64,000 nt of DNA, from sequence record OP079919.1, one strand, 5' to 3'. Both the position numbers and the translations under genes were made by a program. Each line of letters opens with the position of its first letter. The first letter of the stretch is position 1. Under the pieces are notes generated by a model. That model did not search any database. It was not told where the DNA came from and saw nothing but the letters and a program-made list of their open reading frames with translations. Shown here piece by piece: positions 10,047-31,301 of the stretch.

Positions 10047-10049
10047 AAC

Positions 10050-10083
10050 AGTATAGTCCATCCCCTAGGGGATGGACTATACT
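10050..10083. terminator. Perfect 34-bp palindrome before the TSP array
   Basis: AGTATAGTCCATCCCCT-AGGGGATGGACTATACT; long T-tract downstream. Confidence 0.75.
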
Positions 10084-10112
10084 CAACATTTCATTTTTTT
10101 TTTCACTAACGA

Positions 10113-10120
10113 ATTTTATG
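10113..10120 (+). promoter_or_regulatory. Candidate late promoter motif ATTTTATG before TSP1
   Basis: Same octamer precedes TSP3, TSP6 and TSP9; TATG is the phiKZ late consensus. Confidence 0.4.
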
Positions 10121-10195
10121 CTTTGAAAACCGAGTATGTGGGACGCCGCATAAACGTAATCATACATGTATGCTTATTGGTGAATAGAGGACGCT

Positions 10196-12076
10196 ATGAC
10201 CACACCAACTCAACTACCGATACCCAGTAGCAATTTGCTGGATTCGAGATTTAACTTTGAGAAGTTAGACCAGATAGTAAACTCAGATGCCGATTTCTAT
10301 TTGGACCGTTTTGGCAAACAACGTCTTACCGTTTTGGGCGCCACCAATCAGCTCATCCAAAGCCTGAAAGATCAAACTGGTGCCAACAATGTAACCTACG
10401 TCAAATCCAAGGTGGATAAAGTACTGTCATCGATAGGGTATTCCCTTGACGTCATTCCAATGAATATCTTTGACAAGGCTTATTTGTGTTCGGGAACTGA
10501 CAACCCAGATCCTAATACTTGGATCTGGACCGCCGCCCTGCAGGGCGTTTTATCGGATATCGCTTCTTATAAGCTTTTTACCCTCAACGGAAATGACTAT
10601 TATACAACTTTCTCCCTACGAATACCTGGAGGGGTTTATCAGATCGACGATCTGGTTAGTTTGGGTAAGGTAGCAGGGACTGGAGGAGGAGCATCCTTTA
10701 GGACCAACATCGTTATCAACGGAGATGGAAAAAGCAGTTCGGTTCTTCGTCTTATAGGTGATGATAAACAATTGTTTAAATTCACAGAAAGCCGTTTAGT
10801 CATGAGGGATATAGGGCTTCAAACTAACGGGGCTCGTAACATAGGGATGGAATTAGGCGATCAAAATAATTGGGTCCCGATGGCCCACTCCCATCTTGAC
10901 AATGTTTCGATTACCGGATTTTGTCGCGGATTGCTAATAAGCCATTGCTTTGACAGCACGTTCGATTCTTTATTCATATCCGAGATAGCCGATACGGGTA
11001 ATGCGGTTATACCCGCTACCGGTATTGAAATTGCGCAGTTTTTAGGAAAAGATTCCTCTAACAATCCAGATAACTCTAACCAACTGACGTTTATTAACTG
11101 TGTAGTTGAGACGGCTAGGACCGATAACGCTATTTTGTTTTACGTCAACGGAATTAGTAAAAGTTATCCCCACCACGCCATCAACTTCTTAGGTGGGCAC
11201 CTGGAAACCCATAGACGGAACACGGTCTGTTATAAATTTAACAACATGGCCCTGTCAACCTTCACAGGAGTGACATTCAGTCAGAACGGCACTGATTCTA
11301 CTAACCCTGTAAACGTTGGGGTAATAACTGACTCCTGGAATATTATCTTTAATGGCGGAAGAACAGTAACCAATAATGCTAAAAACACTTACGATGATAC
11401 TTGGGATAAATTGATAACCGTAGCGGGATCTAGCATGGGGATCACGTACATGAATCATCATTTTATTACCCCATACCAGACGTATTCTTCGTATAACCGT
11501 AATGCCAACACCGTGTTCAATTTTACCGGGGCGACCGCGGGAATAAACGCCATCGATGCCGATCGCTGTAGATTGAACGACTTCACGTTCAAGCCGTTCA
11601 CCAAATCTATAGAAATAACCAGAATGGATTTGATTACTCAGCGTTTCAGGATATCCGTAAACACTTCTGGTAGTCTGGTTTTCGCGTACTCTAATGATGT
11701 TACTGGCGCCGCCGCTATGACGGATTTGGTAACCATCACCAATACAGGGAATGCGACTTTTCTTGGGTCCGTTACGGCAACTAACGTAACCGGGACGTCC
11801 GATGAGAGGTTAAAAACAGAAATAGGAGAAGTTGATCAAGTTTTAATTGATGTTGTTAAAAGTCTACGGCCTAAGAAGTATCGACTGAAAAACGACCCCC
11901 AAAACAAAATTAGAGTGGGATTCATCGCCCAAGACCTAATAGAACTTATGGATAAAGCTGGATTGGATTTCAAGAAATACAGTATTATCGCAGAGTTTAA
12001 TATTCCTGGGGATGATTCAGAAAACACGTATTATTCCTTGGACTATGATGAAATAATGTTGTTAAGATCCTTGTAG
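10196..12076 (+). CDS. Tailspike/depolymerase TSP1 with C-terminal peptidase S74 intramolecular chaperone
   Basis: Shared anchor (PTQ..IPSS..D.RFN.EKLDQIVNSD...DRFG..RLT), beta-helix-like core, TSDERLKTEI...GFIAQDL. Confidence 0.85.
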   Translation: MTTPTQLPIPSSNLLDSRFNFEKLDQIVNSDADFYLDRFGKQRLTVLGATNQLIQSLKDQTGANNVTYVKSKVDKVLSSIGYSLDVIPMNIFDKAYLCSGTDNPDPNTWIWTAALQGVLSDIASYKLFTLNGNDYYTTFSLRIPGGVYQIDDLVSLGKVAGTGGGASFRTNIVINGDGKSSSVLRLIGDDKQLFKFTESRLVMRDIGLQTNGARNIGMELGDQNNWVPMAHSHLDNVSITGFCRGLLISHCFDSTFDSLFISEIADTGNAVIPATGIEIAQFLGKDSSNNPDNSNQLTFINCVVETARTDNAILFYVNGISKSYPHHAINFLGGHLETHRRNTVCYKFNNMALSTFTGVTFSQNGTDSTNPVNVGVITDSWNIIFNGGRTVTNNAKNTYDDTWDKLITVAGSSMGITYMNHHFITPYQTYSSYNRNANTVFNFTGATAGINAIDADRCRLNDFTFKPFTKSIEITRMDLITQRFRISVNTSGSLVFAYSNDVTGAAAMTDLVTITNTGNATFLGSVTATNVTGTSDERLKTEIGEVDQVLIDVVKSLRPKKYRLKNDPQNKIRVGFIAQDLIELMDKAGLDFKKYSIIAEFNIPGDDSENTYYSLDYDEIMLLRSL

Positions 12077-12082
12077 TTTGGG

Positions 12083-12153
12083 AAATTGGGGGCGTATTTT
12101 TAACTAACGTACCATAACGTCCCCCCCCCACTCCAATTTAGTCAAACAAAGGG
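12083..12153 (+). promoter_or_regulatory. Conserved intergenic stem element, copy 1 (TSP1-TSP2)
   Basis: AATTGGGG...TTTTTAACNAACNTACCAT...CCAATT-AGTCAAANAAAGGG; contains C9. Confidence 0.6.
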
Positions 12154-12157
12154 TGTT

Positions 12158-14299
12158 ATGATGACGACTCCAACTAAGAACGACATTCCAAGCAATAATT
12201 TGTTGGATGCTCGTTTTAACTTTGAAAAGCTCGATCAGATTGTTAATAGCGACGCGAACTATTACCTTGATCGATTTGGTAAACAACGACTCACTTCGGC
12301 CGGATTGGAAGATTTAGCCAGACGATTATCTGAAGATTATGAATCCACCCTATCTAATCAGGATGGGTATAAGAAAATGGGGATGGTGTCTGATTTTACT
12401 ACTCTCAGAACTATCGCCCCAACAATGGAAGGTCAACGCATTCTGCTCAGGTCGGTTGACGCTGGTTCGAATAATGGATCGGGAGAGTTTATAGGACATT
12501 TAGGGAGCAATGGGGTTGACGACGGGGTTAATGTCGCGGTGGGATCCAACTTCTATTGGGAGAGGCTTTCGACTGATTTTGTTAAATCTTCTTCTATAGG
12601 TGATTACACTCGGATTAACTCCTTTATTTCAGCCGGAAATAAGAAGATCACTGTCGATGCCGATCTCAGCGGGTGGCTTAACGTCAAAAGTAACACCACG
12701 ATAACTTTTAACCCATTGTGTCGGCTGATACCTGATACCGATGACAAAGTCGGCATAAGTATTAGAGGAGCCGCCCCAACCTCCTATGTTAATCTAGCTA
12801 CTGATGCATTAGGGATAGATGGCTCAATTACCACCACTAATGACGTTTTTAACATTGGTGATTGGCTGGAAATTAGATCCAACAAGGTTCTTCCCGGCGC
12901 GAATTTTTATCAGGTTAAGCAATCTGTTTTACGCAAAGTGCTTCGTAAAACACAAAATGGAAATGGAACTTGGACATACCGTCTCCACAGTAGTTTAGGT
13001 TATAACTTTAACGTCAGCGACGGTGCTTCCGCTGGGGTTGCGACAGTATTGGAAAATATTGTTATCGATGGGGCTAACTTAAATAAAGACAATTTCACCA
13101 ATATCTTCACCATAGGGATAAACTGTTATTACGTTTATAACCTCACTATAAAAAATATCAACCTATTCGGAACAAAAGTAAAGGATTCTGCCTCAGACAC
13201 TCCAGGAAGATCCGGAATAAAACTGTATAATTGCGTTAACGTTAGAATCGATAATGTGAACGCCTCTTATATAGGGTGGTATGGTGTAGAGGTTATGGGA
13301 TGCAGTGAAAACGTAGATGTAAATCGTTTATACGGTGTGGATTGTCGACATACCGTTTCCATGAACTGGATCGAATCTGGCGACCTTTATGGTGGGCCTA
13401 TGTGGGTTTCGGTAAGGAACTCAGCAAGTCACGCTGCAAGATTAAGTGGGTTTGACACTCATGATCTAGGAAAGGGGATCGCATTTATTAATTGCCAGAG
13501 TTTCGATTCTGGTGATGATGGATTCCAAGTAAGGGCGATGGACACCGTTCTAATCGATTGCCATGCTGAAGGATCGACACTTGATGGCTTCGGCGGCGCT
13601 ACTGGCGCAAAGAACAGCAAATTAGTAAACTGTTCTTTCAACTACAACGTCAGATACGGAATTAATTTAGGTTATGAAGGCGGTATTGTTATCGACTGTG
13701 ACGTCGATAATAACGGTTACATGGGGATTTGTACCATCGGCGGACTCATTCAAGGAGGGTCGGTCACCAATAATTATCCGGCTGCTATCGATATAGGCGC
13801 CGGATTTAATGCCGCCCAAACCGATCTCAAAATCGATGGTGTTAGAATGCCCTCTTCGACCGCCCAGACAAAAATTTTGAGTTTTGCTGGTGACGCGGTA
13901 GCCGCTAACAACAAACCTGAGTTGGTTAGAATGGAAAATTGTTACGTTCCTGGTTACGGAAGAGATTGGGTCAGACTGGTATCGTTCACCGTCCAACCTT
14001 TACCCCCGGTGCTTAATAATAATCTACTTACTTCCAGCTTAACCTCCCCTGGAAAAATAAGCGGGCAAGTCCAATTATCTGCAGGGACAGCCACGGTGAC
14101 AACCACAGAGGTTTTCTCACAACTTGGTAGCGGTGCAAATGTTTTAAAATACTCATCGCAGATTAAGTTGAAACCTATCGCTCGTTCTGCCAATATAGGC
14201 GCTCATTATGTTTCAGCAATCAACAACGGGACGTCCTTTGTAATCAATTCAACCAATTCCTCGGATGGCTCGACCATTTATTGGGAAATAACACTTTAA
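12158..14299 (+). CDS. Tailspike/depolymerase TSP2 (pectate-lyase-like beta-helix)
   Basis: Shared anchor, TSP1/Gp66-type domain (EGQRILL..GSGEFIG..DDG..YWER), parallel beta-helix repeats. Confidence 0.85.
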   Translation: MMTTPTKNDIPSNNLLDARFNFEKLDQIVNSDANYYLDRFGKQRLTSAGLEDLARRLSEDYESTLSNQDGYKKMGMVSDFTTLRTIAPTMEGQRILLRSVDAGSNNGSGEFIGHLGSNGVDDGVNVAVGSNFYWERLSTDFVKSSSIGDYTRINSFISAGNKKITVDADLSGWLNVKSNTTITFNPLCRLIPDTDDKVGISIRGAAPTSYVNLATDALGIDGSITTTNDVFNIGDWLEIRSNKVLPGANFYQVKQSVLRKVLRKTQNGNGTWTYRLHSSLGYNFNVSDGASAGVATVLENIVIDGANLNKDNFTNIFTIGINCYYVYNLTIKNINLFGTKVKDSASDTPGRSGIKLYNCVNVRIDNVNASYIGWYGVEVMGCSENVDVNRLYGVDCRHTVSMNWIESGDLYGGPMWVSVRNSASHAARLSGFDTHDLGKGIAFINCQSFDSGDDGFQVRAMDTVLIDCHAEGSTLDGFGGATGAKNSKLVNCSFNYNVRYGINLGYEGGIVIDCDVDNNGYMGICTIGGLIQGGSVTNNYPAAIDIGAGFNAAQTDLKIDGVRMPSSTAQTKILSFAGDAVAANNKPELVRMENCYVPGYGRDWVRLVSFTVQPLPPVLNNNLLTSSLTSPGKISGQVQLSAGTATVTTTEVFSQLGSGANVLKYSSQIKLKPIARSANIGAHYVSAINNGTSFVINSTNSSDGSTIYWEITL

Positions 14300-14356
14300 C
14301 CTTTGCTGGATGGTGATTGGTCGACGCCGGTCTAAAACTAATTTGTTAGGGTCATT

Positions 14357-14392
14357 TAAAATCCAACCGGTCTTAAGACCGGTTGGATTTTA
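14357..14392. terminator. Perfect 36-bp palindrome between TSP2 and TSP3
   Basis: TAAAATCCAACCGGTCTT-AAGACCGGTTGGATTTTA. Confidence 0.75.
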
Positions 14393-14394
14393 TG
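14387..14394 (+). promoter_or_regulatory. Candidate late promoter motif before TSP3
   Basis: ATTTTATGCT. Confidence 0.4.
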
Positions 14395-14433
14395 CTTACC
14401 GATATTTCAACCTTCCTGACCCGAGGAATAGCA

Positions 14434-16665
14434 ATGACTTTACCAACGCAAAAACCTATTCCGAGTTCATCCATAACTGATCAATTATTTAATGCCGAAA
14501 AGATAGATCAGGTTGTTAACTCGGATGAACTAGAATATTCCGATCGTTTCGGAAAGAAACGATTCACCTTTTCAGGATTATACAACGTTGTACAGAATTG
14601 GATCAGCAGTTTGGGGTCAAGTTCCGGGGCGTCAGCTGTAGGTCTTAGCCAGGGCGGTACGGTTCAGGCCGGTCTCTACAACGTTGTTAATGTCGAACAA
14701 TTCGCTTATCTCAATACTTCAGATGATGATTGGGGTCCGGCTTTTAGAGGGGCCAGGGATAAAGCAATCGAGATATCTGCTCCGGTCGTTACTTTTAAAG
14801 GTCAGTACAAAATAAAAGTAAGCTCCGGTCCGACCACTCACACCCTGCCTTTCGACGACGGAACTTACGATACAAGAAGAACTGGCGAAGTTTTACTTTC
14901 TCCAGAAACCTTGAATACAATGCCTGTAGGATTGGAATGGCCTTCCGGACTCTCCCTTAAATCAGACGGGATCGGAAATAACTCAATTACTTTCGATTGG
15001 GATAATGCCACTGTTGGGCTGTCTCAGGGGATTGGTATCTGCATCAGGGTCAGAAACTGGGACGGAACTTATCTTGCTAAGGCCGGGTCAGTTAATCGCA
15101 TGAATAGCGATATAGCCAATGTGGAGTTTGATGGGTTTAGCGTAAATAATGCCTTTATCGGAATACTGGCCGACGGTATCGTGGGATCAGTCAGTTGGGG
15201 CAGTCTCCAGTTTAAGAAATGTTTCTTACCTATGACTTGGCAGGGCGCCGACAGATGCACGATTAAGAAACTGAGATTTACAGATTGTCCTACCGGATTC
15301 TCGGTAGGTGGATGGTGGCTGACCCGTAACGACATATCAGGATCCAATACCGGATTGGGGGTCCCGCCTTACATTGCAGGAACCGACGTGTACTGCATCG
15401 GATGGATGGACTTCGTTAAAATTGAATCTCTGGAGTACTCTAATAGTACTTCGTTTGACAATTCCCCGTTGTTTGCCGCGGTAGATACTTTCTTCGACAC
15501 CTATTTCTACAAAAGCGCGAACAGCGCTAGAACTGCTAGTGGTGGTCGATGCACTAATACAGGCCCTAACCTAACTAGCGCGAGTACGTTAGCGGCAGAT
15601 TCTCCGTTCTTAGGTATCGCCGGGCGCGCTCACTCACAAATGGGGCGTTACCACCGAAATCACATCTTGAATGAAATTATTTCTCTCAAGACGTGGGGAT
15701 GTTTCAGGGCATCAGTCCTTACCACTGCTAATGGAAACTCGGAGCTCAACGTCCCGGGGTGCATAGTGGGTACCGCGTACATCGAACAGGCCTGTAAGGT
15801 CACGGTTGGCGGTGACGCCACGGTGGGGGGAAGTAATGACTTCGTTACATCAGGTAAAGATGTTTGGAAAGGGACAAAAACTTATTCTAAGTATTATGCT
15901 GGTGAAGGATCCGTAATCGTTAAAGATGGATGGTCTGTTAATAGTTTGGGGTTGTTCCCGTCAGCGCGGACTGTTGCAAGAAATGATAATGGGTATAATA
16001 ACAGACTAAGAAGAACAATTGTCGACGATGGCACAGGGAAACCGGTCATACTCGAACAGCTTTCTGAAACGGTCTATGCGACCCCTCCTCAGAAATTTAT
16101 TCCTAACGCCGTGGGTTCAGTAGACGACAAATATTACTGGGTTCAACTAGAAAAGAACGTCTCTTCAAAGGCTACTATTTATTCTGGTGTTCCAACGACG
16201 GCGGCGCAAACACCTATAACCTCTCCGGCCATTAAAGTAATAATGGAACGTTTAGGTAACAGAGTTAAATTAAAAATTAATTTGGATGCGTCAAATTACG
16301 CAGCCGGCGGCAGTAATCCGGTGGTAATCGGATTTACTGGGGTCTATAAACCTATTCTTACTGCAAGTCCCGATTACGCCCTTGGGGCGTACGGTCCGGT
16401 GAGACCCATAATGGTCAGCACCAAAACATTTACAGTTACCGATTCTACTTCAGTGAGTCGGACGTTTAGGATCGAGCCGGTCGCGCATCAAGCTGGGGTA
16501 TTCACTGATGGCGGCGGGGTTAATAATTACTACTTTGTTTTGCTCACCCAGCATCATACTTCTGACACTAATAGACTGTTGTGGTCGGATTTCACCGGTT
16601 CGTTATGTCAGATAGAAATAGAATATGATACGAATGACGCTATCACTTCATCCAGCGTATTTTAA
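14434..16665 (+). CDS. Tailspike/depolymerase TSP3
   Basis: Start moved from 14383 to the ATG after GAGGA; shared anchor, DDWGPAF entry, beta-rich body. Confidence 0.8.
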   Translation: MTLPTQKPIPSSSITDQLFNAEKIDQVVNSDELEYSDRFGKKRFTFSGLYNVVQNWISSLGSSSGASAVGLSQGGTVQAGLYNVVNVEQFAYLNTSDDDWGPAFRGARDKAIEISAPVVTFKGQYKIKVSSGPTTHTLPFDDGTYDTRRTGEVLLSPETLNTMPVGLEWPSGLSLKSDGIGNNSITFDWDNATVGLSQGIGICIRVRNWDGTYLAKAGSVNRMNSDIANVEFDGFSVNNAFIGILADGIVGSVSWGSLQFKKCFLPMTWQGADRCTIKKLRFTDCPTGFSVGGWWLTRNDISGSNTGLGVPPYIAGTDVYCIGWMDFVKIESLEYSNSTSFDNSPLFAAVDTFFDTYFYKSANSARTASGGRCTNTGPNLTSASTLAADSPFLGIAGRAHSQMGRYHRNHILNEIISLKTWGCFRASVLTTANGNSELNVPGCIVGTAYIEQACKVTVGGDATVGGSNDFVTSGKDVWKGTKTYSKYYAGEGSVIVKDGWSVNSLGLFPSARTVARNDNGYNNRLRRTIVDDGTGKPVILEQLSETVYATPPQKFIPNAVGSVDDKYYWVQLEKNVSSKATIYSGVPTTAAQTPITSPAIKVIMERLGNRVKLKINLDASNYAAGGSNPVVIGFTGVYKPILTASPDYALGAYGPVRPIMVSTKTFTVTDSTSVSRTFRIEPVAHQAGVFTDGGGVNNYYFVLLTQHHTSDTNRLLWSDFTGSLCQIEIEYDTNDAITSSSVF

Positions 16666-16680
16666 CATTTAAGGTGTGAT

Positions 16681-18441: not shown

Positions 18442-18554
18442 TCTTTTAGTATTTAATAGATTGAGGGCGTGTAATCGATAATAACTGAGGGATGATGATT
18501 AAATTTATATTACGTCGACTTCATCCCAGATTGATCGTCATTTAGGAGTTTTCA

Positions 18555-20696
18555 ATGACACAGCCAACTCAGAATCCTATTCCCAGTGGGAATATACTGG
18601 ATCAGATTTTTAACGCAGAAAAGATAGATGAAGTTGTCAACAGTGGCAGCGAGCAATATACGGATAGGCTGGGAGTTAAAAGATTCACTATAGCCGGACT
18701 CACTGCTTTAGTCAGAAATTTGATCAATTCGATATCGGGGAATACTGGCGGAGGGAACGTAGGATTAGCTAATGATGAAATGCTTCAGTCTTATTTGGAT
18801 AAGTACGAAAATGCGTCATGCTCGATCTTCAAGTTCCTTTCCCCAGAAGAAGCTAGAAATGCGAATTTAAAACTTCTCGTCAATATAGACCAGGCAGTTG
18901 CCTCCGCAGCCGATGCTGGCGTGAGTTCCATTAAACTCCCACCCGGACACTTTGAGTTTAATACCACCACAATGCTTTATAATGTTTGTATTGTGGGTAG
19001 TAATGAATCAGAAGCCCCAGATCTTCAACTCGAAGCGACAGATGGCTCTTCAGGGAAGTTATCACTGAATACCAAAGGTACCGTATTGCACCTTACTGGT
19101 AATTCCGCAGCAAATGGCATCACCTTTAATACGAATACCCCGTCGTCTTCTGTAGTTGGGGTAAGCCGTTGTTCTGTTTATTATCCCGATCAAGACTGGG
19201 CCAACTGGTCAGTGGGAGGGACAGATATAGATGGCGTGACTTATTATCAGCCGACGGTGTACCCGGCGGCGTTTATAATAAACGGTGGAATGCGGGCTTT
19301 CTTCGATAAAGTCTTTTTTATCAACGCATATCAATGGATAGAAATAAGAGACACCCAAATACCGATGATCGGTAAGATAGCGGGAACCCTCATCAATCGT
19401 GGTGTTCAGATCACACGTATGGGAGCGGGAGGATACACGGATACGGTTAACTCCTATCCTTTCTGGACATGGGCTTGTGGGTTTAGGGGTAACTCCATGC
19501 GAGCCAACCTGTACCAAACCTTTAAGGGAATTTGTTATGAGGTAGGTAACGATGACGGAACGACGCGAACTGTAGAACAGATGCTGATTAATCGTCTTAA
19601 CGTTATCGGGTGTGCGGACGGACTCATTTGTGGTGGAAAGGGCGTGACGCTCAATAGCGCTAAATTCGATAACTGTATGCGAGCCATCACGGTTAACAGT
19701 TTGGATAATTCTGCTTACCACAGTTTCAGCAATGTCTGGGCGTCGTGTTATTACAATAACAATTATGTGTTTAAACAGAGAACTGATGGGAGCGTTTACG
19801 TTTTCTCTACGAATAGTTCGACCCCTGTAAATATTAATAATTTTAATGTTGTAAGATCCGACGGTATAGGGATAAACATGCCGTATGCCTCTGGGTCAAA
19901 CATCAGTAATGTGGTCATTCAACAATTGGGTTGGAAAGGGTTTGTTTTGGGTTCTGCCGGAAGAAGCACAGACGTGTTGAATGTTAACACGTGTAATGTG
20001 AACTTTTATACCGGGGATTCGGCTTTAACCCAGATAGGTTATGAGATTGGCGATTTTGTAAGATGCTCGATTAAAGGACTGCAGTACAAAGGTGGGAGTA
20101 ACGTAACGCCTTACGTCATGACAGGGACATTGAATCCGTACGAATCCGGCAAAGAAATAGATTTAAGTTCTCTCGACGGCCCGCTTTATAAAGGGGTAAG
20201 CCAGTCTATCGTTTCTGTTATTCGTGGGAGAATACGCCGTCTTGTGGGGGTAACAGCAAGTTCTACAGACAGTGTTCTCGTGACATCGTTATCGGGGACT
20301 AATACCGGCGGTACAGCTTTAAACTGCGGCGTGGGTGTAAGAAACACGGTATCAACCGGAAATGGCCATGGGGTGTTAGTACTTTATTCGTCTAAGGCGG
20401 GAGAGCTCGTTGAGACAGCAGAAGTTTTTAACGACGGAGCCGTTTTAGGGGTCAGGCCGCGATCAACAACTGCCGTGCTAGGAGATACGAGTAACCCTTG
20501 GAATTCGGCGGATATAAAAACCATCAGGGCGACCTCGTCGATTACACTTAACGGCAATCCAGTTGGGGTTAAAGTTAGTGTGCCGGCGTCAGCTACCGCC
20601 ACTGGAGTGGTAGGTCAGTGGGCGGCCGATACGACCTATATCTATATTTGTGTGGCCACCAATACTTGGGTGAGGGCCAGTTTAGCAACCTGGTAA
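18555..20696 (+). CDS. Tailspike/depolymerase TSP5
   Basis: Shared anchor, IKLPPGHF, beta-helix, tail-fibre-type end GQWAAD..YIYICVATNTW.R. Confidence 0.85.
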   Translation: MTQPTQNPIPSGNILDQIFNAEKIDEVVNSGSEQYTDRLGVKRFTIAGLTALVRNLINSISGNTGGGNVGLANDEMLQSYLDKYENASCSIFKFLSPEEARNANLKLLVNIDQAVASAADAGVSSIKLPPGHFEFNTTTMLYNVCIVGSNESEAPDLQLEATDGSSGKLSLNTKGTVLHLTGNSAANGITFNTNTPSSSVVGVSRCSVYYPDQDWANWSVGGTDIDGVTYYQPTVYPAAFIINGGMRAFFDKVFFINAYQWIEIRDTQIPMIGKIAGTLINRGVQITRMGAGGYTDTVNSYPFWTWACGFRGNSMRANLYQTFKGICYEVGNDDGTTRTVEQMLINRLNVIGCADGLICGGKGVTLNSAKFDNCMRAITVNSLDNSAYHSFSNVWASCYYNNNYVFKQRTDGSVYVFSTNSSTPVNINNFNVVRSDGIGINMPYASGSNISNVVIQQLGWKGFVLGSAGRSTDVLNVNTCNVNFYTGDSALTQIGYEIGDFVRCSIKGLQYKGGSNVTPYVMTGTLNPYESGKEIDLSSLDGPLYKGVSQSIVSVIRGRIRRLVGVTASSTDSVLVTSLSGTNTGGTALNCGVGVRNTVSTGNGHGVLVLYSSKAGELVETAEVFNDGAVLGVRPRSTTAVLGDTSNPWNSADIKTIRATSSITLNGNPVGVKVSVPASATATGVVGQWAADTTYIYICVATNTWVRASLATW

Positions 20697-20700
20697 TAAT

Positions 20701-20738
20701 TATTACTCCTTCTCCGGTTAACCGGAGAAGGAGTAATA
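20701..20738. terminator. Perfect 38-bp TACTCC-family palindrome between TSP5 and TSP6
   Basis: TATTACTCCTTCTCCGGTT-AACCGGAGAAGGAGTAATA. Confidence 0.75.
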
Positions 20739-20748
20739 GATACGTCCG

Positions 20749-20756
20749 ATTTTATG
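20749..20756 (+). promoter_or_regulatory. Candidate late promoter motif before TSP6
   Basis: ATTTTATGCT. Confidence 0.4.
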
Positions 20757-20821
20757 CTGATCTAAATTCAGTAGACTTGCGCAAGTCTTTTATACTACAT
20801 TCTTTTTAAAGGAGTAACCTC

Positions 20822-22711
20822 GTGGCTACAACTCCAACTACGGGTGATATCCCCAGCAATGCTGCGGTGGACCTTAAGTTTAACTCGGAACAATTCGACC
20901 GAGTAATGAATTCTGACGATCTGACTTATACGGATCGTTTTGGTAAAAAACGTATTACAATGAAAGGGGTTCAGGAACTCGCTAATGGCTTCCAGGATAC
21001 TTTCACTAATCTGTTGGGTTCTCCCGACGGGTTCAAATTAATCGGCGGGGTTAAATCTTTTGATACCCTGAGATCGACACCAGTGAGAACCGAAGGCCAA
21101 CGTATTTTCCTCAAATCCTATTATGAAAACGGAGTTACTGGGAGTGGGATTTTTATTGGGCGCATCGGAACAAAATTAGATGACGGTGGGACAGTAGCTC
21201 AGGGAATTGGATATTACTGGGAACGTATTCCTTGGTCGAGTCTTACTGCGGAAGACTTCGGAGCAAAAGGTGACGGCGTTACTGATGATAGCTCGGCCAT
21301 ACTAGCTGCCGTGGCTTTTTCCTCAAGCACCGGAACATCGATGGGTCTTTTATCTGGCAAAACCTATGTCTTTAAAGGATCTGTTGGATTATCGATCGAC
21401 CTGGGTAAATTTTCTTTCGGTTGTTTTAACGGGAGAAGTAAACTTGATTTTTCTGCTTTCACCGGATCCAACGCAATAAATGTATTTAGTTCCCCGGGCT
21501 ACCCTACCTCCATGTACAGAAACACAACTAACAGACTGATAGGTTTGGAGGTTTACGGTGGGTTAGTTGCTGGCGTAAACGGCTTGCTGCTGGGGCACGA
21601 CGATTATTCCTACAATGGTCAAAGTGTGATAGAACACTGCGCCTTTGTCAGGTTCGATAATGTGATTCTTTGCGGCAAGAACACATGGCGAACTAAGTTT
21701 ATTTGTTGTACAGTCTCCACCGGAATAACCTCGGTCTTTAATGCGCCTGCGGGATTAGAGAATTCAGGAGAATCGGTGACGTTCTCCGGATCGCAAATTA
21801 GCGATTCAAACGGAGCCCCTATTATTGTTAACTGTGCTAGTTTTTCCCTGGGGCTTGTCGGGGGGACTTCAGTACTAAATACACGCATCCTCATTAACGC
21901 CCAAGGCGCGACGGTACTGATGGATGACATGGGTAACGAAGAAAACCCGGGTCAGCAGGGCTTTTATGTTTACGCTGATGTTAAAGGCGCGGGAGCCCGA
22001 CTAATTATCACCAGTTCTACGATAGTTTGCAATAACCCATCAGCTCAAACTAAATCTTTGTTTAATGTCGATCAAAACGCATACATCATCCTTAACAATG
22101 TAAAAATGCAAGGTAATGGTTATAAATTCGAAGTAGATCCGACAGGCGACCAGGTTGGGAAATGGATTAGCGGGAAAGGTAAAGTCTTGGTATCTGGGGT
22201 TACGGGCGATCCGTTATCAGGGGCAGGAAATATCCCAATCCACGAATCGTTGTCACCGATCAGGAACTGGAACTTTGATTCGGGAGATCTGAGCGATTGG
22301 ACCATCAATAATTCAGGATCCGCATCCCAAACCGGAGTGGTCGGTACGGCGTATAAAAAAGTAGGGGATTACGGCCTTCGTCTTACTTCAGTGGCCGGCC
22401 TTAATGTTTTTGCTACCTCTTCTTTCCCTGTGAGACCTGGCGGGTATTATAAAACAAGTTTCTGGGCCAAAGTAGTTACCGCCAACTCAGGTGCGACTAG
22501 TGCCGGCAACCTCACCCTGTCGTTCAAAACAGCTTCCGGAGTACAAATAATCTCACAAACCGCCAATCTTCCTTCCGCGGTCACTGATTGGGCTGTTTAT
22601 GGCGCATTCATTTGTGGGGACGTCCCTGTAGGGGCTGTCACTGCTGAGATAAGTCTGAGAGCGTCTTCCGGAGCTGTGGTTGATTTCGACGCGGTTCTTT
22701 TTAATTTTTAA
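20822..22711 (+). CDS. Tailspike/depolymerase TSP6 with C-terminal CBM-like domain
   Basis: GTG start after AAGGAG; anchor, Gp66-type domain, FGAKGDGVTDDSSAI, C-terminal NWNFDSG..W jelly-roll pattern. Confidence 0.85.
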   Translation: MATTPTTGDIPSNAAVDLKFNSEQFDRVMNSDDLTYTDRFGKKRITMKGVQELANGFQDTFTNLLGSPDGFKLIGGVKSFDTLRSTPVRTEGQRIFLKSYYENGVTGSGIFIGRIGTKLDDGGTVAQGIGYYWERIPWSSLTAEDFGAKGDGVTDDSSAILAAVAFSSSTGTSMGLLSGKTYVFKGSVGLSIDLGKFSFGCFNGRSKLDFSAFTGSNAINVFSSPGYPTSMYRNTTNRLIGLEVYGGLVAGVNGLLLGHDDYSYNGQSVIEHCAFVRFDNVILCGKNTWRTKFICCTVSTGITSVFNAPAGLENSGESVTFSGSQISDSNGAPIIVNCASFSLGLVGGTSVLNTRILINAQGATVLMDDMGNEENPGQQGFYVYADVKGAGARLIITSSTIVCNNPSAQTKSLFNVDQNAYIILNNVKMQGNGYKFEVDPTGDQVGKWISGKGKVLVSGVTGDPLSGAGNIPIHESLSPIRNWNFDSGDLSDWTINNSGSASQTGVVGTAYKKVGDYGLRLTSVAGLNVFATSSFPVRPGGYYKTSFWAKVVTANSGATSAGNLTLSFKTASGVQIISQTANLPSAVTDWAVYGAFICGDVPVGAVTAEISLRASSGAVVDFDAVLFNF

Positions 22712-22719
22712 TGGTGAGC

Positions 22720-22749
22720 TAGGGGAGGGGGCGCCCTCCTCCCTTATTT
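22720..22749 (+). terminator. GC-rich hairpin between TSP6 and TSP7
   Basis: AGGGGAGG...CCTCC(T)CCCCT followed by TATTT. Confidence 0.6.
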
Positions 22750-22764
22750 ATGAGGTTTCTAAAA

Positions 22765-24480
22765 ATGACCACGCCTACCAATAATGACATTCCGAGCAGT
22801 TCGGTACAAGATAGGTTGTATAACGCCGAGAAATTTGATGAATTCATGAATTCATCGAACACTAATTTCACTGATCGCAAAGGAGTTTCACGATGGACAC
22901 TAAGCGGAATCAGAACTGTTATAAGTAACTGGATGACGAGTCTGAGTAGCAATGCAGGCGGAAACACCATAAAGGTCGATAATGCGCTACTACCAGACTT
23001 GGACTATGCGCCGAGCATTTTTAGATTTATGACCGACGCAGATATCGATTCGATGAAGAACACTCTGGGTAGCGAAGTTCCTGTCGATTACGCCTTACAA
23101 GCAGTTATCGATGCCGGTTATAAGTCAGTCAGATTCCCCCACAACGTTAAGGGCATCTATATTCTTTCTGGGTTGGTAACACTCCCTTCAGCCTTCACAA
23201 TCTTTGGAACGTGTTCCAAACCATATAGTAGTATTACCGACTCTTCCTTCTTAAATAAAGGGGTGACTTTACGTAAAGCCGTCGGGGCGGATTATCTGTT
23301 CGGAGCCGGTTCGGTATTCAGAATTTATGGGTGTAATCTAGATGGAAGAGACAACCTTCGCCCTCTAATCAACCAGACCAATCAAATACGCGGCGGAATA
23401 TTAGAAGATTGCGGGATCTACCGTTTTCTTTATGGAGTCGGGAGTTATGGTTACACCTCTATTGTTGTTAAACGATCATCCATTTGTTCAAATAACATAG
23501 GAATAAGGAACCTTATCGACAGCCGTATTATGGACGTTACCCTCAATGCCAATAAAGGTAACGGGGTCGATAACCAGGTCGGGGCCAATAATAATATTTT
23601 TGAAAACGTCAGGAATGAATGGAATGAAGGGATAGGGTATTATTTTTATGGGTCGGTGGGGAACATCATTACTGGTGAACTTATTGATAGATCTGGTTCG
23701 GCCAATGTTGTCGTCCTGGCCGGTGGATCCGCATTGATTTCAGGGGTTATCTCCCAACGACCCGCTCGTACGTTGAGTGAGGACTCAAGTTATAACACTC
23801 ATTTCTATGTGGCCGGAAGTAAATCAAAACTTTGTTTATCCGGTGTAACTACGGCAACGGGCATTGACGACGGGGGTACCGGAACTTTAACGCCACAAAG
23901 GACAATCGTGATAGGCGGGACGAATACCGACGTGACCGTTCTTTCTAGCGGGTGCGATTTATCGGGAAGTATTCTCTCGCCGTTAAGATTCGACGTTACT
24001 CCAGCTACGGTAGGATTTAGAAACAATATTGGCGTTGACGACTGGGTTAACACCGGGCAATATCAGTTCATCAAAGGAAGAGCGTCGATCGGTAGTCAGA
24101 AAAATGCGGTGATCTTGGCCAGTGGTGTGGGGAGTACCGCGACGTTAGTTTTTGATAACACAGGGTTCGTCGACCCCACTTCTAATTTCCCCGATATACC
24201 TAAGAAACGAAAAATTATCATAGAAAGCATGACTTCGGTATCGGCTTCCAGAACTGTAGGTTTTTATGAAGTTTCGTTATTGACCAGGCGTTTCTCTAGC
24301 ACTGCCGGTTTTGATGTCTTACAGGAAACATCTTATCCTGCTGGAGCGTGGGCGCGGACTACCGCAACTGGTGTTTCTATAAACATTGCCCTCTCAGCGG
24401 ACGCCAAACAGATAACAGTTACGCTAACCAACGTAGATGGCGTCGGAAGATTTATAGATGCTGCTCTTAAGTGGGATTAA
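22765..24480 (+). CDS. Tailspike/depolymerase TSP7
   Basis: ATG after GAGG; variant anchor (DRLYNAEKFDEFMNS..TDRKG.SRWTL), beta-helix with NNN.F.NVRNEWN. Confidence 0.85.
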   Translation: MTTPTNNDIPSSSVQDRLYNAEKFDEFMNSSNTNFTDRKGVSRWTLSGIRTVISNWMTSLSSNAGGNTIKVDNALLPDLDYAPSIFRFMTDADIDSMKNTLGSEVPVDYALQAVIDAGYKSVRFPHNVKGIYILSGLVTLPSAFTIFGTCSKPYSSITDSSFLNKGVTLRKAVGADYLFGAGSVFRIYGCNLDGRDNLRPLINQTNQIRGGILEDCGIYRFLYGVGSYGYTSIVVKRSSICSNNIGIRNLIDSRIMDVTLNANKGNGVDNQVGANNNIFENVRNEWNEGIGYYFYGSVGNIITGELIDRSGSANVVVLAGGSALISGVISQRPARTLSEDSSYNTHFYVAGSKSKLCLSGVTTATGIDDGGTGTLTPQRTIVIGGTNTDVTVLSSGCDLSGSILSPLRFDVTPATVGFRNNIGVDDWVNTGQYQFIKGRASIGSQKNAVILASGVGSTATLVFDNTGFVDPTSNFPDIPKKRKIIIESMTSVSASRTVGFYEVSLLTRRFSSTAGFDVLQETSYPAGAWARTTATGVSINIALSADAKQITVTLTNVDGVGRFIDAALKWD

Positions 24481-24505
24481 GTAGCTAAATTCCTTATTAG
24501 TAGTG

Positions 24506-24573
24506 GAATTGGGGTGTTTTTAACCAACTTACCATTGTCTTTTGCCTCCACCCCAATTCAGTCAAATAAAGGG
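24506..24573 (+). promoter_or_regulatory. Conserved intergenic stem element, copy 2 (TSP7-TSP8)
   Basis: 11-bp stem GAATTGGGGTG/CACCCCAATTC; same loop and 3' motifs as copy 1. Confidence 0.6.
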
Positions 24574-24577
24574 TTCA

Positions 24578-26311
24578 ATGATGACCGCACCGACTAATAA
24601 CAATGTACCGAGTAGCTCGGTTCAAGACAGATTGTACAATGCTGAAAAATTCGATGAATTTATGAATTCGGATAATCCCAATTATACCGATCGTAAGGGG
24701 AACTCCCGCTGGACTCTGAATGGGATAAGAATAGCCATATCCAATTGGATGACGTCATTGGGTACGTCAGTCGGGTCAGCCTATATTGGTAAAGGAAACG
24801 ATACTGTATCCAATCTTTTAGAGGCCTCCATCACTGAATATCTCACCGCTGAAGATCAAAATACACTCAGAAGTTCGTTGGGGGCGGAAGTCAATGTAGA
24901 TTATGCTTTAAAGGCAGCGATCGACGCAGGTATTCTCCGATTAAGATTCCCTAGGATGATAGGGATTTATGTTCTGGGCGCCGACCCTGTTACCCTTCCA
25001 ATAGGCTTTTCTATGGTCGGGGATAGAACCAGGTTATATACAGCGCCTTCCGATTCTACCTTTCTTAACAAGGGTACTGTGCTAAGATTAAGTTCCGGAG
25101 CCTCTTCGCTGTTCTTGTTAACTCAAAAGCATCAGTTTAGCGGAATTAATTTCGATGGCCGTGATAAAACGGTTAACTTAATGAAAGGAGCGGACCAAAC
25201 TCAATTCTGTAGGTTCTATAATTGCGGAATCCATCGATGGTTAAACGGATTGGGCGGATCTTCTTCAGGCGGATATACGGCTACACTTTCAGTATCTTTT
25301 TGTGATATTTCTGGAAATTATCGGGGCGTGCGTAATCTTATCGATTCCAAAATATCGGATAGTACCATTAACGCCAATGACACCAATGGGGTCGAACTTA
25401 ACGTAGGCGCCAATAACAACGTCTTTATTAATGTCAGAAACGAATGGAACAATGGCGTTAACTACTACGGGTATGGGGGTAAGCGCAACATCGTCGTCGG
25501 GGAGCTATGCGATCGAGCCGGACTCAACGGAATTGTTGCTGCGGGAGGCGCCCAGTGGTCCCTCGAAGGAGTGAATGTGCAGCGTTCGGGCAGGCTCGCC
25601 ACCCAGGGATCTGTCGACGACGCCCATTTCTATGTGACTGGTGAAGGATCATCTATCATAATGAGCGGAGTTTACACAACTCAAGGCTCTGACGATACAG
25701 GGGGTGGGAGAGTCTCCCCGTCGTACACTCTGGCTGGTGGAGGAAATTCATCTGACACGAAAACATTCTCGGCCGTGAACAGCGTCTTGAGCGGATTTGG
25801 GGTTTCAGCGATAAGACCTGGGTCCTCCACTTTCTCTAATATGAGCGTTGTGGGTTGTAACGGCTTTTACGATAGAATATCCGGAAACACAATAAATTTC
25901 TACGAAGGAAACTTCTCTTTGGGGAAAAGGGCTTCGTCGTTGAGTTTAAGTGGAACGGGTTCTACGGCACAGATCACATTCCCTACAACAGACTCGTTTC
26001 CGCAATACAGGGTGGGTTTTACCAGACAGTTGCATATAACAGCTAGGAACAACATCAATACGGGATCGGTCGCTTATTACAACGTCCCGCTATTCTTTTA
26101 TAGAGAACAATCGACCGCCGTTGTGCGAGCGAATACAAGTAAAGAAGAAACAATGGTGACCCTCAGCGGAGGAACTTGGGGTTTAACCGCGGCGTCCCCG
26201 ACCGGGGTCGCTATTGACCTGGCGGTTTCTTCTGATGGCCTGACGTTAACCGTAACGCTGACAGCCATCGATAACTCATCAAGAATCATTGATGTGGAAC
26301 TGAGGGCTTAA
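24578..26311 (+). CDS. Tailspike/depolymerase TSP8 (paralog of TSP7)
   Basis: Start moved to ATG after AAAGGG; same anchor subtype and core motifs as TSP7. Confidence 0.85.
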   Translation: MMTAPTNNNVPSSSVQDRLYNAEKFDEFMNSDNPNYTDRKGNSRWTLNGIRIAISNWMTSLGTSVGSAYIGKGNDTVSNLLEASITEYLTAEDQNTLRSSLGAEVNVDYALKAAIDAGILRLRFPRMIGIYVLGADPVTLPIGFSMVGDRTRLYTAPSDSTFLNKGTVLRLSSGASSLFLLTQKHQFSGINFDGRDKTVNLMKGADQTQFCRFYNCGIHRWLNGLGGSSSGGYTATLSVSFCDISGNYRGVRNLIDSKISDSTINANDTNGVELNVGANNNVFINVRNEWNNGVNYYGYGGKRNIVVGELCDRAGLNGIVAAGGAQWSLEGVNVQRSGRLATQGSVDDAHFYVTGEGSSIIMSGVYTTQGSDDTGGGRVSPSYTLAGGGNSSDTKTFSAVNSVLSGFGVSAIRPGSSTFSNMSVVGCNGFYDRISGNTINFYEGNFSLGKRASSLSLSGTGSTAQITFPTTDSFPQYRVGFTRQLHITARNNINTGSVAYYNVPLFFYREQSTAVVRANTSKEETMVTLSGGTWGLTAASPTGVAIDLAVSSDGLTLTVTLTAIDNSSRIIDVELRA

Positions 26312-26378: not shown

Positions 26379-27152
26379 ATGCATAATCGTAGTGTTAAGC
26401 GTGCTAACCGCGACGCTCGTCGCGAAGCAAGACGTCAAGATAAGTCCCAAAGTAGCCAACTGAAACTGGTGGACAGCAATTTCAGTGAAGTAAATCTACC
26501 TCTTGCAAAAGCTGATCGGAGTAAGATTGAGCCGAAAAACCCAATGCAGCAAAAATATTGGGATGGGTTACATGCCCACGATGTTGTCATCGGTATAGGG
26601 GAAGCGGGTAGCGGTAAAACGTTCCTCCCAACTTGTTATGCCGCGGAACGTCTGATGGCTAAAGACGTGGAAAAGATCATCGTTACACGGCCAGTTTTAC
26701 AGGCCGATGAAGATCTGGGTTTTCTCCCCGGGGATGTTAATGAGAAATTCGCACCTTACTTCCGACCGGTCTACGATATCTTACTGAAACGCCTGGGTGG
26801 TGGAATGCTCAACTATTGCATGAAGCCTGGCGTGGAGAAAGTTGAAGTCGCCCCCTTTGCTTTTATGAGAGGTCGTACTTTTTCTGACTCAGTAGTGATT
26901 CTTGACGAAGCGCAAAACGTTACAGTCATGCAGATGAAAATGTTCATCACTCGTATGGGTGAGAACACTACGGTAATCATCAACGGCGACCTTACCCAGT
27001 GCGATCTTCCTAAAGGAGTTAAATCCGGTCTGGAAGATCTGCTGGAACGCATCGAACGAGATCCTGAAAATGGATTCCCGGTTTATCGTTTCAACGCCGC
27101 TGATAGTGTGCGGTCAGATATTTGCTCCAAAGCCCTGAAGCTTTACAAATAA
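26379..27152 (+). CDS. phoH: PhoH-like ATPase
   Basis: GEAGSGKT, IIVTRPV, LGFLPGD..EK, FMRGRTF, DEAQN, GD.TQ.D. Confidence 0.95.
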   Translation: MHNRSVKRANRDARREARRQDKSQSSQLKLVDSNFSEVNLPLAKADRSKIEPKNPMQQKYWDGLHAHDVVIGIGEAGSGKTFLPTCYAAERLMAKDVEKIIVTRPVLQADEDLGFLPGDVNEKFAPYFRPVYDILLKRLGGGMLNYCMKPGVEKVEVAPFAFMRGRTFSDSVVILDEAQNVTVMQMKMFITRMGENTTVIINGDLTQCDLPKGVKSGLEDLLERIERDPENGFPVYRFNAADSVRSDICSKALKLYK

Positions 27153-27157: not shown

Positions 27158-27194
27158 AATAACTCCTATTCCCTTATCGGGAATAGGAGTTATT
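27158..27194. terminator. TACTCC-family hairpin after phoH
   Basis: 16-bp stem, TTATC loop. Confidence 0.8.
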
Positions 27195-28614: not shown

Positions 28615-28650
28615 TTTACTCTACCTCGCGATATCGCGAGGTAGAGTAAA
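28615..28650. terminator. Perfect 36-bp palindrome, bidirectional terminator between convergent genes
   Basis: TTTACTCTACCTCGCGAT-ATCGCGAGGTAGAGTAAA. Confidence 0.8.
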
Positions 28651-31225: not shown

Positions 31226-31293
31226 CTCTCCCTCCGACTATAAAAATTAACGGCCACACATATTACTATGCATGACTCCTAATGAACTTGGGT

Positions 31294-31301
31294 CATAAAA
31301 T
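31294..31301 (-). promoter_or_regulatory. Candidate late promoter motif before TSP9
   Basis: CATAAAAT on plus strand = ATTTTATG on minus strand. Confidence 0.4.

Follow-up and report, generated by a model that had tools for sequence, protein, structure and literature searches.

The sequence window analysed here, a 64,000-nucleotide stretch of record OP079919.1, comes from the Klebsiella jumbo phage KPN8, a phiKZ-like myovirus of 257 kb with annotated split RNA-polymerase subunit genes and a tubulin-like gene. It holds a receptor-binding-protein (RBP) cluster whose nine genes (T1 to T9, Table 1) code for tailspikes or fibres, and it raises the question of how so many spikes could be assigned to places on one tail. 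How multi-RBP phages place their RBPs is known in few cases, and in each of these the positions have different modules. In KPN8, conserved anchor classes and their conserved order suggest a separate tail attachment site for every class. The explanation that accounts best for the data, whose chance of being right we put at about a half, combines six anchor classes, probably with separate docking helices, with recombining bodies and with units delimited by hairpins and TATG motifs.

Table 1. Features of the RBP cluster of KPN8 (window coordinates).
Feature	Coordinates	Strand	Remarks
Hairpin, putatively closing the upstream unit	10050..10083	+	15-bp perfect stem; -26.6 kcal/mol; kept in all six phages
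Promoter-like motif RATTTTATGM	10112..10121	+	contains TATG; T1 start 76 nt downstream
T1 (KPN8_72)	10196..12076	+	class A anchor 10196-10363; tail-fibre body; C-terminal Peptidase_S74 chaperone domain
T1/T2 intra-pair spacer element	12084..12138	+	ends AATTGG...CCAATT, long loop; stops 23 nt 5' of first codon (12161) of T2 anchor
T2 (KPN8_73)	12158..14299	+	class A anchor 12161-12328; K1-lyase-like beta-helix body; 99% identical to the single class A protein of phiKp_32
Hairpin 3' of T2	14357..14392	+	-25 to -28 kcal/mol; overlaps the following promoter-like motif
Promoter-like motif RATTTTATGM	14386..14395	+	T3 start 40 nt downstream
T3 (KPN8_74)	14434..16665	+	class B anchor 14434-14601; body like KN1-specific depolymerase 9M4D; GenBank start (14611) leaves out the anchor
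T4 (KPN8_75)	16681..18441	+	class B anchor 16681-16848; N-proximal domain like Phi92 gp150; 15-nt gap to T3
T5 (KPN8_76)	18555..20696	+	class C anchor 18555-18722
Hairpin 3' of T5	20701..20738	+	about -30 kcal/mol; ACTCC...GGAGT core typical of KPN8 unit ends
Promoter-like motif RATTTTATGM	20748..20757	+	T6 start about 66 nt downstream
T6 (KPN8_77)	20822..22711	+	class D anchor 20825-20992; pectate-lyase-like body
GC-rich hairpin, T6/T7 junction	22722..22743	+	-22.8 kcal/mol; variant motif TTATTTATGA (22744-22753) directly after
T7 (KPN8_78)	22765..24480	+	class E anchor 22765-22932; body phrog_6518, like 7XY1
T7/T8 intra-pair spacer element	24507..24558	+	ends AATTGG...CCAATT; stops 23 nt 5' of first codon (24581) of T8 anchor
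T8 (KPN8_79)	24578..26311	+	class E anchor 24581-24748; paralogous to T7 over its full length (overall identity 43%, anchor 82%)
phoH-like gene	26379..27152	+	no terminator between T8 and phoH
Hairpin 3' of phoH	27158..27194	+	likely end of T6-T8-phoH unit
Hairpin between convergent g82 and T9	28615..28650	.	likely T9 terminator; counterpart annotated as terminator in phage Miami
T9 (KPN8_83)	28655..31225	-	class F anchor 31058-31225; body resembles tailspike 8X8M; protein 100% identical to Miami gp099
Promoter-like motif RATTTTATGM	31293..31302	-	T9 start 69 nt downstream

A shared N-terminal anchor falls into six classes

A homologous anchor of ~56 residues opens eight ORFs on the + strand (10196-26311) and one on the - strand (28655-31225). 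A profile built from the window's own anchors recovers all nine (E 1e-29 to 1e-38), which are the only copies in the entire KPN8 genome. The anchor starts at residue 1 or 2 in every one of these proteins, and likewise in 146 of the best 150 library matches (residues 3-5 in three, residue 11 in one).

The initial annotation had described anchor pairs T1/T2, T3/T4 and T7/T8 with shared motifs, had left T5, T6 and T9 as singletons, and had proposed about six docking-site classes. The quoted motifs are present in the translations and the pairs are real, with identities over 52 amino acids of 76% (T1/T2), 81% (T3/T4) and 82% (T7/T8) against 42-63% for every other pair of KPN8 anchors; T5, T6 and T9 are indeed single in the KPN8 genome. 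Phylogeny of the anchors, proposed there as a check, resolves exactly six classes (A to F) among 41 anchors from the six known Miami-like phage genomes. Each class is monophyletic and the members of each pair fall in one class. Bootstrap counts out of 200 are 196 (A), 193 (B), 137 (C), 200 (D), 199 (E) and 187 (F), so that C has 68% and the other five classes have 93-100%. The class residues also hold in 62 further representatives with distinct bodies from a library of 1.84 billion proteins.

Within classes, pS ranges from 0.64 to 0.82 and pN from 0.085 to 0.18, class D standing apart (pS 0.15, pN 0). Between-class pN is 0.35, about three times the within-class value, and synonymous sites are saturated in both comparisons. 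Because synonymous sites are saturated yet amino acids are conserved within classes, the pairs are old, selected paralogues rather than fresh duplicates. Recent tandem duplication or gene conversion is ruled out by this saturation and by the nucleotide identity of the KPN8 pairs, which is only 61-72%. The phoH gene proved unusable as a divergence baseline, as two phages carry a different allele. In class D, the first 50-56 residues are 100% identical at the amino acid level in all six phages, and conservation extends over the first ~130-160 aa. Across all classes, 17 of 56 columns are invariant. Phage YC1 carries a hybrid C/B anchor, and the classes are therefore not absolutely insulated from each other.

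Gene order is fixed while bodies are exchanged

The order A-B-C-D-E on one strand with F on the other is identical in the six genomes; these are all closely related, so that this conservation is worth roughly one observation. The suggestion that related phages might keep the anchor order while the bodies vary was borne out in this set, since bodies of slot orthologues are mostly unrelated between genomes. The nine KPN8 bodies are themselves unrelated or distantly related enzymatic bodies, matching tail, tailspike or depolymerase families and solved spikes. Homology between genomes ends at anchor codon 30-60 (about 130 for class D), and one breakpoint falls inside the anchor. Copies per class range from 0 to 2 among phages with nearly identical backbones. 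Miami is devoid of classes B and C, the entire B-C unit being missing as a block, and in phiKp_32 the only A anchor resembles T1 at the 5' end and T2 at the 3' end. Neighbours of one class (A A, B B and E E in KPN8) may arise and collapse via unequal recombination of tandem anchors, and a body recombined in behind an anchor would inherit the virion position of that slot. In the phage collection, multi-copy arrays of the anchor are confined to the six Miami-like genomes, and an IMG/VR query with the class D N-terminus found no more distant relatives.

Hairpins, promoter-like motifs and probable transcription units

The four strong hairpins listed earlier (at 10050, 14357, 20701 and 22720) all exist. 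However, the claim that pairs match terminator-delimited units is weak for KPN8 and does not hold in general. No strong hairpin is present at the T4/T5 and T8/phoH junctions, so T5 joins the T3/T4 unit and phoH joins the T7/T8 unit; with no terminator separating it from T8, the phoH-like gene probably lies in one unit with it. The hairpins would thus punctuate the units as T1-T2, T3-T4-T5, T6/T7-T8-phoH (the slash marking the T6/T7 hairpin) and T9. The statement that hairpins fall between groups and never inside a pair is true of KPN8, with a chance probability of about 0.11 (three internal hairpins placed at seven junctions and missing the three within pairs, C(4,3)/C(7,3) = 0.11), but not of YC1 and ZKP1, where strong hairpins lie inside same-class pairs (C/C, -23, and E/E, -25 kcal/mol, respectively).

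It is probable that this coincidence of pairs and hairpins arose by chance, the hairpins being ordinary punctuation and the adjacency of pair members a footprint of local duplication or insertion beside the anchor that is most alike, with no regulatory meaning. Besides the probability given above, the two relatives with hairpins inside pairs and the sharing of units by T5 and phoH with pairs, it is favoured by the frequency of strong hairpins, which occur about once per 5 kb throughout the window, share the ACTCC...GGAGT core and are a general punctuation of the phage. However, the hairpin-and-motif boundaries ahead of A and at the A/B and C/D transitions are kept in every relative that has those junctions, and Miami lacks the B-C unit as a block. 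In addition, the T1/T2 and T7/T8 spacers each hold an inverted repeat with 6-base ends AATTGG/CCAATT and a long loop (-17 to -18 kcal/mol), and these two elements are homologous to each other. The conserved boundaries, the block absence and the shared spacer element indicate that the unit structure is not random, though the units are not the pairs.

Co-transcription of pairs, which had also been proposed, is plausible in KPN8, where the intra-pair spacers contain no canonical terminator and the promoter-like motif stands only at unit starts. RATTTTATGM occurs four times in the 64 kb, each time in sense orientation and 40-76 nt ahead of T1, T3, T6 and T9, and is a candidate promoter from which the phage's own RNA polymerase would transcribe the four units through the TATG it contains. 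In phiKZ, the late promoter is TATG, with transcription starting at the G (PMC4666361). A sigma-70 promoter scan gave counts equal to the shuffle expectation, which is irrelevant because the phage has its own RNA polymerase. Judged by sequence, the hairpins are putative terminators. Of the four stems, only that at 14357 is directly followed by a U run; at 10050 the run is shifted away from the stem, at 22722 it is interrupted, and at 20701 there is none. A simple terminator scan detected no excess of terminator-like sites (19 vs 17.9 in shuffles).

The anchor is homologous to that of the Sf11 tailspike

The nine-anchor profile matches residues 2-60 of chain G of PDB entry 9OCC (E 1.8e-23), and T3, T4, T5, T7 and T9, searched singly, all match the same anchor (E 2e-7 to 1e-10). 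By similarity (to gp13 residues 4-59) and by its extreme N-terminal position in all nine proteins, the anchor is a module of the Sf11 gp13 type. In Sf11, a Shigella siphophage, three gp13 anchors clasp one helix of the distal tail protein gp17 in a bundle, with published contacts at gp13 Arg16 and Lys19 (PMC12724387). These two residues correspond to columns 15 and 18 of the window anchor. Class-specificity scores peak at columns 13-15, 17 and 18, which include both contact residues, and columns 17, 18 and 26 are strictly class-fixed. Column 17 is Ser/Ala, Gln, Gln, Leu, Arg and Val in classes A to F, respectively, and Leu in 78 of 88 siphovirus-type (single-copy-type) anchors. The Sf11 contact residues are retained by class D alone, whose D-L-K-F contact segment is Sf11-like. 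Each class is 50-58% identical to the Sf11 anchor and as distant from the other classes. Helical periodicity was absent among the class-specific columns (p about 0.38).

Docking classes and their possible partners

Following the Sf11 structure, three anchors of each trimer would wrap one helix from a virion protein. Since the classes differ most at the segment with the Sf11 contact residues, they probably bind as many as six distinct docking helices at the periphery of the baseplate. By this analogy, our data support the six anchor classes as docking classes, since the anchor is homologous to that of a solved anchor-adaptor bundle, class-fixed residues lie at or beside published contact positions, and purifying selection acts within classes despite saturated synonymous sites. 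The proposed address code is plausible, and homology searches returned no docking partner. Proteins of one class probably occupy a common site class, either jointly or in competition. Six mutually orthogonal plugs for six baseplate helices, with the slot setting the position and same-class neighbours as alternative occupants, is a more tentative proposal that we place a little short of an even chance.

In tblastn searches of the entire KPN8 genome with Sf11 gp17 (whole and residues 100-175), gp16 and gp14, the best E was 0.22. KPN8 has no gp17-like distal tail protein as partner, and its partner(s) must therefore be different proteins. A profile of the gp17 adaptor region could not be built, all 156 homologues being at least 95% identical. 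The small conserved genes flanking the cluster (g66-g71 upstream, g81-g82 downstream) were rejected as adaptors, having no informative family and no paralogy. KPN8_35/37/38/39 were rejected as class-matched scaffolds: they are four paralogues, not six, and Miami carries them collinearly and at the same lengths despite its lack of classes B and C, so that scaffold and class do not co-vary.

It appears unlikely that docking is generic, the nine anchors using one kind of site or interchangeable sites and the classes being old paralogue lineages kept by synteny. The class residues would then serve, for example, against trimer mixing of co-expressed spikes or against tandem-repeat recombination. 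Such docking would agree with crossovers inside anchors and the existence of hybrid anchors, with the failure of the search to give class-specific partners, and with the invariant columns, which may reflect a common core interaction. The backbone virion genes show no visible change as class copies vary, which fits shared or vacant sites and, equally, non-specific docking; the linkage of slot and class could also come from synteny-preserving recombination alone. However, the columns with the highest class specificity fall together with the two published Sf11 contact residues, column 17 differs among classes A to F while being mostly Leu in single-copy-type anchors, and pN within classes is low at saturated synonymous divergence. 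Moreover, the classes are as far from each other as from the Sf11 anchor, whose bound protein differs.

Quite improbable is a branched arrangement, on the model of the CBA120, G7C or K1-5 complexes, in which one or a few classes (likeliest D) sit on the baseplate and the rest dock on other RBPs or small adaptors: branching is the norm among other multi-spike phages (PMC6872550), and the fully conserved class D anchor with its extended conserved N-terminal region and ancestral-type contact residues would suit a baseplate role, but no helix donor was found, every anchor sits at the very N-terminus, like that of the directly attached Sf11 gp13, and a scan of T1-T9 revealed neither a T4 gp10-like nor another known branching domain at the sensitivity of Pfam HMMs. 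In Miami, an anchorless RBP-like gene, 093, begins 3 nt after class A gene 092, which suggests piggy-back attachment; the Miami record notes similarity of 093 to RaK2_00525 and of 092 to RaK2_00526.

If separate docking sites for the six classes are correct, a positional address code has been created through radiation of a single siphovirus-type anchor, one small and structurally solved module having diversified into six conserved classes. The system is compact and readable from sequence, and docking specificity could be traced to just a few columns (13-18). The virion of KPN8 or Miami is predicted to show, in a solved structure, as many as six kinds of anchor-helix bundle. If docking is generic instead, synteny-preserving recombination alone can freeze the order of paralogues. 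For annotators, true gene starts and the constant anchor portion can now be located.

Comparison with known systems

The closest counterpart is Sf11 gp13 (PDB 9OCC; PMC12724387), in which a trimeric enzymatic spike carries a homologous ~56-residue module at its extreme N-terminus; the KPN8 anchors presumably form an equivalent helical-bundle attachment. However, a single anchor gene is present in Sf11 and in about 228 further records of small siphoviruses, whereas KPN8 has nine in six classes, and KPN8 differs further in its lack of a gp17 homologue and in keeping the contact residues in one class only.

CBA120 (TSP1-4), G7C (gp63.1/gp66) and the K1-5/SP6 adapter system likewise place several RBPs on a virion via conserved N-terminal modules, with bodies swapped by recombination. 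These phages use T4 gp10-like domains or peptides of 7-11 residues, a different module per position (PMC6872550). In KPN8, by contrast, the six paralogous classes come from the radiation of a single module family.

PhiK64-1/RaK2 and phiKp24 are, like KPN8, Klebsiella jumbo myoviruses with 9-14 clustered depolymerase-type RBPs (PMC6872550, PMC9700779, PMC13385381), and some KPN8 and Miami bodies resemble theirs, although they belong to different phage lineages. A possible parallel for transcription is phiKZ, with its TATG late promoters and phage-encoded multisubunit RNA polymerase (PMC4666361): KPN8 carries annotated split RNA-polymerase subunit genes, and the putative promoter motif at its four units contains TATG. 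The extended form RATTTTATGM is, in the sequences compared here, specific to its own phage group.

Nine receptor-binding genes with a common anchor

Klebsiella phage KPN8 (OP079919.1, 256,576 bp) matches window positions 10000–26400 with 100% identity; subtracting 62000 from a record position gives the window position. Genes for a split multisubunit RNA polymerase and for a tubulin-like protein are annotated in KPN8, and it is therefore a phiKZ-like jumbo myovirus. No paper discussing its receptor-binding genes was found in the literature searched. A homologous N-terminal module, the anchor, opens eight long ORFs on the plus strand and one on the minus strand, and a piecewise profile search of the whole KPN8 genome reveals exactly these nine anchors (T1–T9), with 17 invariant columns. 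The pairs of similar anchors described in the initial annotation are real: over the first 52 residues, identity is 76% for T1/T2, 81% for T3/T4 and 82% for T7/T8 versus 42–63% for the remaining pairs. The GenBank CDS of T3 (KPN8_74) begins at window position 14611, without the 59-codon anchor. All nine bodies come from tail, tailspike or depolymerase families, and T7 and T8 are full-length paralogues with an overall identity of 43% and one common body family.

Features of the receptor-binding cluster and its relatives (window numbering unless a record is named)
Feature	Position	Detail
T1		Peptidase_S74 chaperone domain
T2		K1-lyase-like body
T3	start 14434 by anchor (mechanical ORF 14383)	matches solved spike 9M4D
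T4		matches solved spike 6E0V
T6		pectate-lyase-like body
T7	start 22765 by anchor (mechanical ORF 22750)	matches solved spike 7XY1
T8	start 24578 by anchor (mechanical ORF 24542)	
T9	28655–31225, minus strand	matches solved spike 8X8M
Strong hairpins of the cluster	10050, 14357, 20701, 22720	
Hairpins with ACTCC...GGAGT core	4279, 20701, 27158, 40758, 50924, 61337	A/T-flanked
T1–T2 spacer	12084–12138	inverted repeat
T7–T8 spacer	24507–24558	inverted repeat
YC1 C–C spacer	L008, reverse-complemented, 7632–7673	AATTGG...CCAATT ends
ZK_P1 second class E gene	L011, 13101–13457	118-aa anchor-only remnant
phiKp_32 class C gene	L002, 15097–17369	apparently interrupted once: 259-aa anchor-bearing ORF, then a separate ORF
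Miami genes 092 and 093	L007, 1072–4392	093 begins 3 nt after 092
KPN8_35, 37, 38 and 39	L016, 37669–50000 and beyond	large virion/minor-tail paralogues

Six anchor classes in a conserved order

A search of a 50,697-record phage collection yielded six related phages in seven records (Miami twice): KPN8, phiKp_32, YC1, Raoultella phage VB_ZK_P1 (ZK_P1), Miami (genus Miamivirus) and 'Stenotrophomonas' phage BUCTxx100. In the homologous clusters of these phages all anchors were located (41), and a neighbour-joining tree built on their first 50 residues resolves six classes, all of them monophyletic. At the sequence level, the proposal of about six anchor classes has strong confirmation, and the classes are conserved across the genus. 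The anchor of the first class C gene of YC1 is class C in its first half (including columns 12–18) and B-like in its second half; it is a natural hybrid, and this accounts for the lower bootstrap of class C.

Anchor classes, with residues at columns 17 and 18 scored in 40 anchors (the 118-aa remnant left out)
Class	KPN8 members	Bootstrap (of 200)	Column 17	Column 18
A	T1, T2	196	Ser/Ala	Arg
B	T3, T4	193	Gln	Leu
C	T5	137	Gln	Ile/Leu (Ile/Val among 62 further representatives)
D	T6	200	Leu	Lys
E	T7, T8	199	Arg	Leu
F	T9	187	Val	Arg

In each of the six genomes, classes A-B-C-D-E follow each other on one strand, with F beyond phoH on the other strand. The number of copies of a class differs among them: AA BB C D EE F in KPN8, A BB C D E F in phiKp_32 and BUCTxx100, A B CC D E F in YC1, A B C D E E(remnant) F in ZK_P1, and A D E F plus an anchorless gene in Miami. 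Bodies in the same slot are mostly unrelated, with full-length near-identity in only five slot orthologues, so the anchor order is kept in related phages while the bodies vary, a positive outcome of the check proposed in the initial annotation. Backbone nucleotide homology extends into the first 30–45 codons of T1 and T9 and the first ~130 codons of T6; at the other genes, nucleotide alignment between genomes is limited to the anchors (40–60 codons at 72–89%).

The anchorless gene of Miami, 093, is RBP-like and lies directly behind the class A gene 092; notes in the record liken 092 to RaK2_00526 and 093 to RaK2_00525. It may be that 093 attaches piggy-back. The cluster architecture of BUCTxx100 is the same as that of the Klebsiella phages despite its Stenotrophomonas label. 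The phoH proteins of BUCTxx100 and ZK_P1 are only 63–65% identical to that of KPN8 between flanks of ~90% identical DNA, so the mosaic reaches past the receptor-binding genes. The wider region of phiKp_32 is flanked by two IS200/IS605 tnpB genes.

Age and exchange of anchors

Within classes, anchors have nucleotide identities of 69–80%, with saturated synonymous differences (pS 0.64–0.82) and pN of 0.085–0.18, while pN between classes is 0.35. Class D departs from this pattern, with 96.8% nucleotide identity, pS 0.15 and pN 0. Class-specific amino acids have been held by selection. Recent duplication or gene conversion as the origin of the KPN8 pairs is excluded by their nucleotide identity of only 61–72% and saturated synonymous sites; the pairs are old. 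The single class A anchor of phiKp_32 is T1-like in its first 15–20 codons, with an upstream region identical to that of T1, and from about codon 20 onwards it matches T2 at 100%. Crossovers do happen inside anchors, and the KPN8 pair and the single phiKp_32 gene would be one unequal tandem-anchor exchange apart. Such exchange offers a simple reason why genes of the same class adjoin.

Hairpins, promoter-like motifs and predicted units

The four hairpins of the initial annotation are present and strong. RATTTTATGM is present at four places in the 64-kb window (chance expectation 1.14 anywhere in it), always sense-oriented and 40–76 nt upstream of T1, T3, T6 and T9; the G of its TATG lies at 10120, 14394, 20756 and 31294. 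Genome-wide, KPN8 has 11 copies, one of them 31 nt upstream of KPN8_37. The late promoters of phiKZ have the core TATG, with the start site at G (PMC4666361); the KPN8 motif contains this core. A strong hairpin together with the motif precedes A and separates A from B and C from D in every relative having those junctions, and the B-C unit is missing from Miami as a whole block. The GC-rich hairpin between T6 and T7 precedes a variant of the motif, and T9 is provided with a terminator-like hairpin of its own; no strong hairpin is present at T4–T5 or between T8 and phoH. From this placement, the predicted units are [T1 T2], [T3 T4 T5], [T6|T7 T8 phoH] and [T9].

It had been suggested that the anchor pairs match hairpin-delimited units. 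The pairs do lie inside units, but the units are not pairs and the match is weak: the coincidence of pairs and hairpins in KPN8 has P ~0.11, the window averages about one strong hairpin per 5 kb, and in YC1 and ZK_P1 strong hairpins are found between the members of same-class pairs. An ACTCC...GGAGT core, apparently the standard unit-end signal of KPN8, recurs in many of the window's strongest hairpins.

The spacers of T1–T2 and T7–T8 are homologous to each other. Both carry an inverted repeat with ends AATTGG/CCAATT and a common loop and leader sequence, followed by a ribosome-binding site and a double-Met start; the repeats stop 23 nt short of the codon that opens the T2 and T8 anchors. The C–C spacer of YC1 has the same ends, again 23 nt before the second C anchor, and the pattern is found nowhere else in the six phage loci. 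The repeat may act in a leader structure or as a processing site, or it may be an insertion footprint.

Class-specific columns and docking

The sole solved-structure match of the nine-anchor profile is PDB 9OCC chain G (residues 2–60, E 1.8e-23), the tailspike gp13 of Shigella siphophage Sf11. Residues 4–59 of gp13 have been modelled as N-terminal helices, and the three anchors of the trimer form a bundle with one adaptor helix, supplied by the distal tail protein gp17; in this bundle, Arg16 and Lys19 of gp13 make salt bridges with Glu129, 136, 147 and 152 of gp17 (PMC12724387). These two contact residues correspond to anchor columns 15 and 18. The highest class-specificity scores (0.79–0.89) fall on columns 13, 14, 15, 17 and 18, which lie on either side of the invariant Asp16, with both contact positions among them. 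Columns 17, 18 and 26 are strictly class-fixed, and the class residues at columns 17/18 recur in a further 62 representatives whose bodies are distinct. Class-to-class identity (47–67%) is comparable to that of each class to Sf11 gp13 (50–58%).

The linkage of class and slot could also be kept by synteny-preserving recombination alone. The hybrid C/B anchor of YC1 counts against class-specific docking, and so does the absence of helical periodicity in the class-specific columns. The specific columns, the residues at columns 17/18 and the interclass distances point towards it, and we give class-specific docking roughly an even chance. Homology to a solved complex and selection both favour the address code suggested initially, but no docking partner was found: whereas Sf11 gp13 binds gp17, the KPN8 genome has no homologue of Sf11 gp17, gp16 or gp14, and small genes neighbouring the cluster were uninformative as docking partners.

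KPN8_35, 37, 38 and 39 have a common N-terminal domain of ~260 aa, and the KPN8_35–39 block is collinear in all six phages. As class-matched partners they were rejected, the four paralogues being unchanged in Miami, which is without B and C.

Comparison with known anchors

By tblastn, the anchor is found once per genome in ~228 records of 45–48-kb siphoviruses, and in multiple copies only in the six Miami-like phages of the phage collection. Matches to the anchor come from 1,821 clusters of a 1.84-billion-representative library, nearly always at the extreme N-terminus. Column 17 is Leu in 78 of 88 siphovirus-type representatives, and among the six KPN8-type classes only class D retains the Sf11-like D-L-K-F. 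The KPN8 arrangement is a previously undescribed variant of a known anchor-based mounting of receptor-binding proteins.
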